From contig NIVC01001362.1 in the NCBI GenBank assembly GCA_002269645.1, forward strand, positions 124,001 to 188,000: a DNA stretch of 64,000 nt, given 5' to 3'. The notes under the pieces were generated by a model, which had not been told where the DNA came from, did no database searches, and saw only the letters and a list, made by a program, of their open reading frames with translations. Position numbers and translations under genes: made by a program. Of the stretch, positions 8,931 to 51,381 are shown piece by piece (positions within the stretch are counted from its first letter, which is position 1; every line of letters begins with the position of its first letter). This stretch comes from Macrostomum lignano (taxonomy: Eukaryota).

Positions 8931-9944
8931 AATAAAATAGCTTAATGCAAATGTTCTGCTTGCAGCTTTTATATATATTCACTTTCAATAGTCGCTGATT
9001 TGAGTAAGTGCTGTCGCTCTGTACGAATATGTTTTACTTCAGTTGAATAACTTTGCTGCAGAATCTCACATTTAGTTTTTTATTATATCTTGTACTTTTA
9101 TATTGGTTTCTTGCTATCAACATAAAAGAGGCAGAGTCTAGGCCAGACAATAGTAGCCAATAAAAATATTTCATTAAATAACGTTTTATCTTTTTCATTA
9201 AATTTCATTCATAATCGGTTTTTTAGATAAATTTTATCAAATACGTGTACGATTCTTACCTTGCTACTGATTTGAGTAGCAATTAAAGCAAATTTGCTGA
9301 TTTATTTTGTCTATGCTATAAAAATGTTTGTATAATTTTAGTCAATTTATATATGAATAATCAGTGTACACGTTGGAAGCTGCTGAAAATTATAAGCTAT
9401 TCATAAATTTATTTGTTTCTTTTTATTTTAATTTTCTGGCTTTTTATACCAATTTTTAGTAGTATCTTGTTTATTTTCCTGCTACTTTCACAGATCTTAG
9501 TTTCACTAAATATTATAGACGCTATCTATGCAGAGAACAGGGAATTCAGAATCTCATAGCGATTCTCATAAGGAATCTCTTAGCGATTCTCATCCGGAAT
9601 CTCGTAGGGATCCTCATCCGGAATCTCATAGTGATTCTCATCCGGAATCTCAAAGCGATTCTCATCCGGAATCTCGTAGGGATCCTCATCCGGAATCTCA
9701 TAGTGATTCTCATCCGGAATCTCAAAGCGATTCTCATCTGGAATCTCTTAGAGATCTCATTAGATCGTATAAGGTATTCATACGAGCGTACCTTGAATCT
9801 TTTAAGCTTTCTCATTTTGTCAGGAGTATCATAGAGCCGTATGCCATCACCAAAGGTCTCTAATTAGTAAATAAATAAAACATCTTTCAGAGAATTCTTG
9901 CATCTCTGCTTGGTAGAGGCGGCCGCCAGCACTTTCAGCTTGCT
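8931..9944 (+). promoter_or_regulatory. Endophilin poly(A) signal (8931-36) and probable non-coding 5' exons of HSD17B4 (ending at 9003; 9891-9944)
   Basis: AATAAA at 8931; acceptors at 8964-65 and 8990-91; donor GTAAGT at 9004; tttcAG|9891-9944|GTGAGT; acceptor ttattccAG at 11983-84 just before ATG 12012. Confidence 0.45.
9545..9750. repeat. 24-bp minisatellite GATTCTCATCCGGAATCTCATAGT
   Basis: Tandem units. Confidence 0.92.
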
Positions 9945-10207
9945 GTGAGTTTTGAGTCATTCTTTCACACTATTAGATAGTCCAATCTCTATGCTATGAG
10001 CTTATTTGCGCGGTAATTTTGTTCAACTCTTGCCTAGTCCAATAAAAAATAATTTTTATAATAATTAACCGACTCAAATCGACATAATTAAACTTTATGT
10101 TCAGTAAGCTAAACAATTTTGCTTGAATGCGATTCAACTGTCAATGTTTCTTTTGTTAATCTCTGTGCGCTACCTGGTTAGTTTCTGACTAGAATTGTGA
10201 AATTAAG

Positions 10208-11775
10208 GATCCTCCCGGGATTCCCCACTTCAGAATGTCCCCTGGATTCCCCATTTAGGGATCTCTTTGGGATTCCCCACTTCAGAATGTCCCCGGGATT
10301 CCCCATTTAAGAATCTCCTTTGGATTCTCCACTTCAGAATGTCCCCCTGGATTCCCCATTTAAGAATCTCCTTGGGATTCCCCACCAGAATGTCCCCGGG
10401 ATTCCCCATTTAGGAATCTCTTTGGGATTCCCCATTCAAGAATCTCCTTTGGATTCTCCACTTCAGAATGTCCCCTGGATTCCCCATTTAAGAATACCCT
10501 TGGGATTCCCCACTTCAGAATGTCCCCGGGATTCCCCATTTAAGAATCTCCTTTGGATTCTCCACTTCAGATTGTCCCCCTGGATTCCCCATTTAAGAAT
10601 CTCTTTGGGATTCCCCACTTCAGAATATCCCCGAGATTCCCCATTCAAGAATCTCCTTGGGATTCTCCACTTCAGAATGTCCCTGGATTCCCCATTCAAG
10701 AATCTCCTTGGGATTTTCCACTTCAGAATTTCCCCTGGATTCCCTATTCAAGAATCTCCTTGGGATTCCCCACTTCGGAATGTCCCCGGGATTCCCCATT
10801 TAGGGATCTCTTTGGGATTCCCCACTTCAGAATGTCCCTGGATTCCCCATTCAAGAATCTTCTTGGGATTCTCCACTTCAGAATGTCCCCTGGATTCCCC
10901 ATTCAAGAATCTCTTTGGGATTCCCCACTTCAGAATGTCCCCTGGATTCCCCGTTTAAGAATCTCCTTGGGATTCTCCACTTCAGAATGTCCCCGGGATT
11001 CCCCATTTAGGAATCTCCTTGGGATTCTCTACTTCAGAATGTCCCCGAGATTCCCCATTAAAGAATCTCCTTTGGATTCTCCACTTCAGAATGTCCCCTG
11101 GATTCCCCATTCAAAAATCTCCTTGGGATTCCCCACTTCAGAATGTCCCCTGGATTCCCCATTCAAGAATCTCTTTGGGATTCCCCACTTCAGAATGTCC
11201 CCTGGATTCCCCATTCAAGAATCTCCTTGGGATTCCCCACTTCAGAATGTCACCTGGATTCCCCATTTAAGAATCTCCTTGGGATTCTCCACTTCAGAAT
11301 GTCCCCTGGATTCCCCATTCAAGAATCTCCTTGGGATTCTCCACTTCAGAATGTCCCCTGGATTCCCCATTCAAGAATCTCCTTGGGATTCTCCACTTCG
11401 GAATGTCCCCGGGATCCCCATTCAAGAATCTCCTTGGGATTCCCCACTTCGGAATGTCCCCGGGATTCCGCATTTAGGAATCTCTTTGGGATTCCCCACT
11501 TCAGAATGTCCCCTGGATTCCCCATTTAAGAATCTCCTTTGGATTCTCCACTTCAGAATGTCCCCGGGATTCCCCATTCAAGAATCTCTTTGGGATTCCC
11601 CACTTCAGAATATCCCCTGGATTCCCCATTCAAAAATCTCCTTGGGATTCTCCACTTCAGAATGTCCCCTGGATTCCCCATTCAAGAATCTCCTTGGGAT
11701 TCCCCACTTCAGAATGTCACCTGGATTCCCCATTTAAGAATCTCCTTGGGATTCTCCACTTCAGAATATCCCCAT
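10208..11775. repeat. About 52-bp dimeric minisatellite (GGATTCCCCACTTCAGAATGTCCCCT + GGATTCCCCATTTAAGAATCTCCTTG)
   Basis: Alternating related subunits of about 26 bp; probable HSD17B4 5'UTR intron. Confidence 0.95.
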
Positions 11776-12011
11776 TTATGATTTCGTCTAAAACTCACCG
11801 TTTAAGAAACCTTTAGGAATTACCCGCTAAGAATATCTCCCAGATATTTTCTATTTAAAAATCTCGGCAGAATTTTTCGTTTTTGAATCTCCACGGGATT
11901 CCCCATTTAAGAATCTCTATAACTCCATGTAAATAAAGATTCTAAATTTAGATTCCACTGTAAATTGCCCTCCACTTATTCCAGTCCCGAACCCGCTTAG
12001 CAACGGCAGCC

Positions 12012-50248: not shown

Positions 50249-50374
50249 TCTTTATTGGCCTGTTGATTTCTTATTCAGCCTGTAGTGTGCGACAGCTGGC
50301 ACTCTGTAACATGCAAAAATATATGGCCTTCTTAACTTAGGTGGCTGAGACTGACACTGACGCCTGTCACTCCT

Positions 50375-51150
50375 AATGTGGCTACCCTGTGACTCTTGTG
50401 GCCACCCTGTCACTCCTGTGGCTACCCTGTCACTCTTGTGGCTACCCTGTCACTCCTTTGGCTACCCTGTCACTCTTGTGGCTACCCTGTCACTCCTTTG
50501 GCTACCCTGTCACTCTTGTGGCTACCTTGTCACTCCTGTAGCTACCCTGTTACTCTTGTGGCTACCCTGTCACTCCTGTAGCAACCCTGTCACTCCTGTA
50601 GCTACCCTGTTACTCTTGTGGCTACCCTGTCACTCCTGTAGCAACCCTGTCACTCCTGTAGCTACCTTGTCACTCCTGTAGCTACCCTGTCACTCTTGTG
50701 GCTACCCTGTCACTCCTTTGGCTACCCTGTCACTCTTGTGACCACCCTGTCACTCCTGTGGCTACCCTGTCACTCTTGTGGCTACCCTGTCACTCCTTTG
50801 GCTACCCTGTCACTCTTGTGGCTACCTTGTCACTCCTGTAGCTACCCTGTCACTCCTGTAGCAACCCTGTCACTCTTGTGGCTACCCTGTCACTCCTGTG
50901 GCTACCCTGTCACTCCTGTAGCTACCCTGTCACTCCTTTGGCTACCCTGTCACTCCTGTAGCTACCCTGTCACTCCTTTGGCTACCCTGTCACTCCTGTA
51001 GCTACCCTGTCACTCCTTTGGCTACCGTCACTCCTGTAGCTACACTGTCACTCCTTTGGCTACCGTCACTCCTGTAGCTACCCTGTCACTCCTGTGGCTA
51101 CCCTAGCTGTCGCTCCTATATCTAGCCTGTCACTCCTGTAGCTACCCTAG
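50375..51150. repeat. 20-bp minisatellite GCTACCCTGTCACTCCTGT(A/G)
   Basis: Probable MPC2 5'UTR intron. Confidence 0.96.
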
Positions 51151-51232
51151 CTGTCACTTGGCTATCCTGTCACTACGTAACTCCGATTGTCTCCTGTCAT
51201 TCTCACTGTCCCTTCACCTAAACTTTAATTAC

Positions 51233-51381
51233 CTCAAAACAGGTAAACTTGCATATCGTCTATGGCTTTTTTATCTCCTACACACAATTAAGAAAAGATT
51301 AACACAAAAAATATAATTTAATTATTCTGCCGATTTTTTCTCAAATAATTATCGCGCTGATTTGTTTCGTATATGTTTATT
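51233..51381 (-). promoter_or_regulatory. ERGIC1 poly(A) signal (51381-51376) followed by a U-rich acceptor (AG at 51279-51278) and a 45-nt non-coding MPC2 exon (51277-51233)
   Basis: Minus strand: AATAAA..ttttttgtgttaatctttttcttaattgtgtgtAG|GAG..tttgag|GTAATT. Confidence 0.55.

Follow-up and report, generated by a model that had tools for sequence, protein, structure and literature searches.

Do neighbouring same-strand genes in the flatworm Macrostomum lignano share a precursor transcript when kilobases of tandem repeat lie between them, and if so, where would the spliced leader (SL) be attached? The question is raised by a 64,000-nt stretch of contig NIVC01001362.1 (assembly GCA_002269645.1, Mlig_3_7; position x is record position 124000 + x), referred to here as the window, 46% of which consists of tandem repeats. 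The window carries two convergent arrays of genes, endophilin-A (EndoA) > HSD17B4/MFE-2 > TIA1-like on the + strand and ERGIC > MPC2 > BDH1-like SDR on the − strand, and hence four junctions: EndoA > HSD17B4 (J1), HSD17B4 > TIA1-like (J2), ERGIC > MPC2 (J3) and MPC2 > SDR (J4). With confidence a little above even, the arrays would be SL-resolved polycistronic units at one or more of the four junctions, most likely, set in a gene-dense region with minisatellite-inflated introns and spacers.

Trans-splicing of a single 35-nt SL, which the initial annotation of the window assumed by appeal to flatworms in general, is published for M. lignano itself; about 30% of genes are trans-spliced and 15% are in operons, and conserved genes are enriched for trans-splicing (45% versus 30% overall) (PMC8629364). 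Genome-wide, about 10,000 genes have been assigned to operons, defined as adjacent same-strand genes that have no opposite-strand gene between them, with a trans-spliced downstream gene and a repeat-adjusted distance of less than 1 kb between poly(A) and SL sites (Ustyantsev & Berezikov 2021, PMC8629364). An intergenic mode of about 100 bp between trans-spliced genes is seen only after repeats are subtracted, and the authors conclude that repeats form a substantial part of operon intergenic distances (PMC8629364). Transcriptional units in this species are often polycistronic precursors, and genes of one unit have a common Mlig prefix (Wudarski et al. 2017, PMC5730564). Intercistronic distances in parasitic flatworms have a median of 99 bp (Schistosoma mansoni), and SL acceptors there frequently double as cis acceptors (PMC12582326).

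Searches with tblastn and Pfam bore out the gene identities proposed initially and their arrangement in two convergent arrays, each on a single strand; the TIA1-like queries were P0243/P0244 and a human TIA1 sequence. All seven genes found in the window are conserved housekeeping genes according to Pfam. The members of each array are adjacent and in the same orientation, as the adjacency part of the M. lignano operon definition has it, and the GenBank gene calls place nothing between ERGIC, MPC2 and SDR.

Evidence for a shared transcript comes from J4 and its paralogous copies. The ERGIC-MPC2-SDR segment occurs in three copies, on NIVC01001362.1 (the window, L001), NIVC01003431.1 (L002) and NIVC01000230.1 (L003), and the gene order is kept in all of them. 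Mlig prefixes denote clusters of assembled transcriptional units at 95% identity. The exact reconstructed SDR proteins are tagged Mlig029984.g1 in the window, Mlig029984.g8 in L002 and Mlig029984.g5 in L003, and MPC2 is tagged Mlig029984.g7 in L002 and Mlig017085.g2 in L003. In L002, MPC2 and SDR therefore have the common prefix Mlig029984, with consecutive accessions (PAA51433/PAA51434), and an MPC2 that carries the prefix of the SDR units implies that some assembled unit held both genes. In that copy, the finding speaks for co-transcription across MPC2 > SDR or, at a minimum, for read-through. Co-transcription at the other junctions may also take place, as may SL addition itself.

Transcripts overlapping repeats are left out of GenBank, and the comparison of paralogues and annotation covers J3 and J4 only. 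The 90% cluster of MPC2 holds three GenBank genome-derived proteins and no transcript contig, an exact MPC2 look-up likewise returned none, and the nearest Logan contig (76% identity) belongs to another organism and is without the M. lignano SL. The 750-aa HSD17B4 reconstruction has no entry in the protein collection searched, and no M. lignano match came from protein searches in which the query was an HSD17B4 exon or a chimera of several genes, though SDR is in the collection. The presence of three near-identical copies accords with what has been reported for the DV1 line, namely a duplicated chromosome and hidden polyploidy.

If the arrays are polycistronic, RNA polymerase II would continue past the end of the upstream gene, whose mRNA would be cleaved and polyadenylated, and the downstream mRNA would receive the single SL, the 3′ part of which is …CTCAATTTATTGCATG, at an unpaired 3′ splice site. 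This site could lie either just past the upstream poly(A) signal, opening a mini-exon followed by a repeat-filled intron in the 5′ untranslated region (UTR), or beside the start codon, leaving the minisatellite in the spacer. The two layouts could also coexist, given how often flatworm SL acceptors are used in cis as well. The terminal ATG of the SL is not discriminating, since at each candidate acceptor it would produce either a short upstream open reading frame or an in-frame extension, whichever model is taken. A sequence search found no SL gene or SL copy in the window or in the fetched loci.

The initial annotation had opted for the first layout throughout, and the motifs it cited are all present at the positions it gave, with 29–125 nt between poly(A) signal and acceptor and putative exons of 12/38, 104, 45 and 20 nt. 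At J1 (8931–9009, + strand), the first canonical AATAAA (8931–8936) lies 1292 nt after the EndoA stop codon and beyond an 814-nt minisatellite; the proposed acceptors TTGCAG/ and AATAG/ (the slash marks the splice boundary) end at 8965 and 8991, and a donor of perfect consensus, GTAAGT (9004–9009), would close an exon of 38 or 12 nt at 9003. At J2 (19995–20207, + strand), AATAAA hexamers at 19995 and 20020 follow the HSD17B4 stop codon, and the proposed acceptor GACAG/ ending at 20097 and donor GTTACA at 20202 delimit a putative 104-nt exon, with a 31-nt minisatellite at 20234–20949. At J3 (51227–51381, − strand), the ERGIC stop codon ends at 51849, AATAAA lies at 51381–51376 and ATTAAA at 51322–51317, and the proposed acceptor GTGTAG/ ending at 51278 and donor GTAATT at 51232 frame a putative exon of 45 nt (51277–51233). 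At J4 (48641–48798, − strand), AATAAA at 48798–48793 is followed by the acceptor TTTTCTTTTTTCTTGTAG (TTGTAG/) ending at 48667 and the donor GTGAAG at 48646, which bound a putative exon of 20 nt (48666–48647). The J3 and J4 minisatellites have units of 20 nt (50363–51174, − strand) and 34 nt (48043–48639, − strand) respectively; the former varies in length among the three copies and the latter is about 100 nt shorter in L003. Minisatellite length is thus unconstrained, given that array lengths differ among copies.

The presence of such motifs carries little information, as a chance test makes clear. The pattern was defined as a YAG preceded by at least 10 of 17 pyrimidines and lying 30–125 nt downstream, with GT[AGT]A 12–104 nt later. 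When positions outside repeats are drawn at random, 33–38% are followed by it, as are 22 of the window's 49 AATAAA sites, a base rate of 33–45% that weighs against the mini-exon layout. True coding acceptors in the window score 6–14 of 17 pyrimidines and true coding donors include GTTAGC, GTGGGT, GTTGGT and GTAATC; since these sites are equally weak, motif strength is unable to tell real sites from chance. The pattern at the four junctions is therefore real in its motifs but not clearly above chance, and the splice and poly(A) motifs of the M. lignano genome are so degenerate that UTR exons cannot be placed by sequence alone. The inference that these genes form operons is plausible and right in kind, given the published SL and operons and the MPC2-SDR prefix in L002, but the mini-exon architecture attached to it is unsupported, being built on low-information motifs.

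Acceptors close to the start codons compete well with those proposed next to the poly(A) signals. The published SL-acceptor motif, [T/C]TNCAG, is matched by one of the five proposed acceptors (8965), three of the five being TAG, and is also matched by sites near the ATG at 11984, 50304 and 50280. At J1, TTCCAG/ (11979–11984, + strand) is 27 nt upstream of the HSD17B4 ATG and has the top pyrimidine tract (14/17) among the 52 YAG sites in the interval. At J2, the acceptor CCCCCCTTCTATAG/ (AG at 21386–21387, + strand) is 139 nt upstream of the TIA1-like ATG and has the top tract (16/17) among 32 YAG sites. At J3, TTACAG/ and CTACAG/ (50280–50309, − strand), ending at 50304 and 50280, lie 55 and 31 nt upstream of the MPC2 ATG at 50248 and are kept in all three copies. 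For three of the four downstream genes, an acceptor as good or better is thus found 27–140 nt before the start codon. SDR is the only downstream gene lacking a strong acceptor near its ATG, with two weak acceptor-like AGs, GCGCAG/ and TGCAG/ (48005–48011, − strand), 10 and 15 nt before it.

Ranked by pyrimidine content, the proposed sites divide. The J4 acceptor at 48667 is first of 51 YAG sites, which, together with the weakness of the sites near the SDR ATG, favours a mini-exon there, and the J3 acceptor at 51278 is tied second of 35; in contrast, 20097, 8965 and 8991 are mid-rank in their intervals, whereas the near-ATG sites 11984 and 21387 rank first. At J1, the combination of the motif match at 8965 with the perfect GTAAGT donor also speaks for the mini-exon. 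Most of the SL-acceptor motif matches of the J1 interval (26 of 32) sit in its tandem arrays, a 24-nt array at 9549–9760 and a 52/104-nt minisatellite at 10217–11773 (both + strand). Every unit of the latter carries CCCCACTTCAG/ (CTTCAG), which fits the SL-acceptor motif, and the array amounts to about two dozen potential decoy acceptors in any RNA spanning it. Overall, the simpler published layout, with the repeats in the spacer and an SL acceptor near the ATG, fits at least as well as the mini-exon layout.

The paralogous copies bear on two of the proposed mini-exons. The unique spacers of J3 and J4 are 97–99% identical throughout among the copies, too uniform for conservation to separate exon from spacer, and the J3 acceptor provides the one informative change: GTGTAG/GAG of the window is GTGTAAGAGG (GTGTAAG) in L002 and L003, the AG at 51279–51278 having become AA and the AG having moved by +1 nt. 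The claim of a J3 acceptor at 51278 accordingly does not carry over to the two paralogous copies. At J4, the GenBank SDR coding sequences are 5′-partial in all three copies, with starts 6, 21 and 3 nt ahead of the ATG (at 48000 in the window, 12259 in L002 and 12164 in L003); L003 has an extra C in its short leader. The SDR reading frame is open through the 20-nt mini-exon from either nearby acceptor, with no in-frame stop codon. An open frame would have allowed the models to reach the mini-exon, and its being missing from all three counts against its being spliced on.

The poly(A) signals fit the proposed architecture unevenly. The annotated AATAAA was said to be the first that could be found after each upstream stop codon. 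For MPC2 this is so only in the literal sense, since another AATAAA shares bases with the stop codon itself; moreover, only the canonical hexamer was considered, and ATTAAA hexamers at 7805 and 7813 come earlier for EndoA. That ATTAAA pair (7805–7818, + strand), an alternative poly(A) signal for EndoA, lies 166–174 nt past the stop codon, with a U-rich stretch after it (T fraction 0.53 at +10 to +50). For MPC2, AATAAA hexamers lie at 49900–49895 and 49893–49888, of which the second overlaps the stop codon, and a GU-rich element follows 25–55 nt downstream at about 49865–49837 (the whole block 49837–49900, − strand); in this textbook arrangement of motifs, the poly(A) site of MPC2 is likely to lie directly after its stop codon. 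The GenBank MPC2 coding sequence ends at the A-rich stretch over the stop codon (117 aa, no stop) in two of the three copies (L001/L003 position 10351) and is complete (119 aa) in the third, though the sequence is identical, which points to either a transcript terminus or an artefact of internal priming at this stretch. In HSD17B4, the AATAAA at 20020 with its strong GU/U-rich downstream stretch makes a convincing candidate for the poly(A) signal; the stretch is the same one that had been taken as the pyrimidine tract of the 20097 acceptor. By contrast with these earlier signals of EndoA and MPC2, which speak against the mini-exon layout, the AATAAA chosen at J4 (48798) precedes an A-rich, U/GU-poor region and that at J3 (51381) is also poor in downstream U/GU content.

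Spacing depends on which of these sites is used. After repeat adjustment, the distances from stop codon to ATG at J1–J4 are 1790, 1094, 788 and 1297 nt. With plausible pairs of poly(A) signal and acceptor, the adjusted distance is 185–645 nt for J2–J4 when the initially proposed poly(A) signals and the acceptors near the start codons are taken, and up to 1220–1582 nt for J1, or for J4 with the earlier signals. The suggestion that minisatellites mask tight linkage agrees with the published repeat-inflated operon spacers, but the placing of the repeats in UTR introns is unproven from sequence.

The best-surviving alternative is that the genes are transcribed independently, each unique spacer containing a promoter of its own, possibly with a short non-coding first exon that ends at the GT donor and a repeat-filled first intron, in which case the AGs discussed above would be irrelevant. 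This is a serious competitor, although we consider it less probable than polycistronic transcription. As a prior, 70% of M. lignano genes are not trans-spliced and 85% are outside operons. Several observations weigh against the operon reading and most of them suit independent genes. If poly(A) addition occurs at the AATAAA overlapping the MPC2 stop codon, the unique MPC2-SDR spacer is about 1.2 kb, above the 1-kb threshold and of promoter size, and a promoter would also fit in the roughly 0.3–1.1 kb of unique spacer after EndoA; J1 reaches 1582 nt after adjustment if ATTAAA 7813 and acceptor 11984 are used. The starts of the three GenBank SDR models are ragged, none of them follows an AG, and they are thus unlike an SL-defined 5′ end. 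MPC2 and SDR have different prefixes in L003, so that bridging was assembled in one copy (L002) only. Finally, synteny is not kept in other flatworms, the ERGIC-MPC2-SDR linkage being absent around MPC2 in Echinococcus and Schistosoma, where the neighbours differ. On the other side stand the common prefix of MPC2 and SDR in L002, the enrichment of conserved genes among trans-spliced ones and the fit of same-strand triplets with short repeat-adjusted spacing to the published operon criteria. We retain SL-resolved polycistronic units at one or more of the junctions as the favoured reading.

Within that favoured reading, a more specific proposal is that the SL acceptor keeps to about 30–125 nt past the poly(A) signal of the upstream gene and that minisatellite growth is channelled into a 5′ UTR intron behind a tiny non-coding exon, which we regard as improbable. 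One point for the mini-exon layout is its spacing, as about 100 nt corresponds to both the published intergenic mode and the S. mansoni median. However, the published mode of about 100 bp needs repeat subtraction, which implies that annotated SL sites are commonly downstream of repeats. Were channelling to occur, it would keep the coupling of 3′-end formation and trans-splicing tight despite kilobases of repeat; it would refine the view that repeats simply inflate intercistronic distances and would predict SL-first mini-exons genome-wide. The exact architecture at all four junctions at once, with the SL at 8965/8991, 20097, 51278 and 48667, each followed by a mini-exon and a repeat intron, is more doubtful still, as the motif base rate, the shifted J3 AG, the SDR models and the poly(A) signals reviewed above all count against it.

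The operon reading belongs to a class already known for M. lignano, and repeats in a 5′ UTR intron are its sole new element. If it holds, the window provides two more examples of a catalogued phenomenon and nothing new in kind. The wider point is whether minisatellites are tolerated in intercistronic spacers or kept out of them by way of 5′ UTR introns, which bears on the coupling of polyadenylation and SL addition in flatworms.

Compared with published operons of the same species and assembly, the arrays are alike in their same-strand conserved neighbours, repeat-inflated spacers and spacing in or near the range, and MPC2 > SDR resembles published units in having a common prefix in one paralogous copy. 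They would differ in that the repeats were initially placed in a 5′ UTR intron behind a mini-exon and not in the intergenic distance, and in that two junctions may exceed 1 kb, depending on the poly(A) signal. The mini-exon model also recalls SL2-type operons of Caenorhabditis elegans (Blumenthal; Allen et al. 2011), with two to three genes, a U-rich stretch and an acceptor about 100 nt from the poly(A) signal, although the agreement of 29–125 nt with the roughly 100 nt of C. elegans holds with the putative sites and the pattern is common by chance. Unlike C. elegans, M. lignano has one SL and no specialised SL2, which leaves the SL2 feature of those operons without a counterpart; C. elegans intercistronic regions and 5′ UTRs have no kilobase minisatellites, and the function of the C. 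elegans U-rich (Ur) element is not established in flatworms. Parasitic flatworms such as S. mansoni provide the 99-bp median spacing, and acceptors shared by cis- and trans-splicing would let both layouts coexist, but their genomes are without the minisatellite load of the window.

The remaining gene structures are as follows. On the + strand, the 3′ part of EndoA spans 2310–7638 (tblastn; Pfam BAR, 8.5e-32, and SH3), with a last exon at about 7426–7635, a TGA stop codon at 7636–7638 and its 5′ exons beyond the window start. The HSD17B4/MFE-2 coding region (12012–19715; tblastn; Pfam adh_short, MFE-2 hydratase N, MaoC and SCP2) was reconstructed as eight exons (12012–12313, 12692–13265, 13929–14169, 15143–15402, 16426–16715, 17995–18359, 19168–19298 and 19626–19715) encoding 750 aa that end in -AKL, with the ATG at 12012 and the stop codon at 19713–19715. 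One of its introns contains a 0.9-kb (TGTC)n microsatellite (14181–15111).

The TIA1-like gene (21526–31744, exon ends approximate; tblastn; Pfam RRM_1, 1.1e-38) has two detected RRMs. The coding sequence most likely opens with an exon at 21526–21657 (MLYELVMVPP...), with the ATG at 21526; RRM exons lie near 23350–23427, 23506–23680 and 29200–29400, and Q/P-rich 3′ exons extend to about 31741. The first RRM seems to be missing, and the start MLYELVMVPP... is as in P0244, a related metaclust protein with which an open frame at 23089–23300 has a ‘PSAAL’ stretch in common; an extra small TIA1-like exon may exist in that frame.

On the − strand, the ERGIC-family gene (51849–63217; tblastn, Pfam) has exons at 63217–63083, 63012–62490, 61904–61776 and 51956–51849; a first exon of 9 aa was not found within the window. 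Its last intron is roughly 10 kb long (51957–61775) and contains long open reading frames lacking a Pfam match, for example 59089–59937 (283 aa) and 56013–56792 (260 aa), a mariner-like peptide fragment (56795–57025), a 300-nt direct duplication at 52612 and 53857 (1245 nt apart, 99% identical) and a 162-nt tandem array (55336–55821), probably the decayed remains of mobile elements. MPC2 (mitochondrial pyruvate carrier 2; Pfam, GenBank) is a single coding exon of 119 aa (49889–50248), and the BDH1-like SDR (45767–48000; GenBank, Pfam; locus tag Mlig029984.g1) has three exons, an ATG at 47994 and a stop codon ending at 45767, its GenBank coding sequence being 5′-partial from 48000.

An Rfam scan of the whole window gave no match. 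Further microsatellites are (AG)n of 0.37 kb (6909–7279), (AGTT)n of 1.3 kb (25043–26380) and (ATCT)n of 1.8 kb (42904–44689). The seventh gene, outside the arrays initially proposed, is an F-box/LRR gene with approximate limits 34122–37976 (− strand; open reading frames; Pfam F-box-like, 2.6e-15), which is the next − strand gene after SDR, past a repeat-rich spacer of 7.8 kb.

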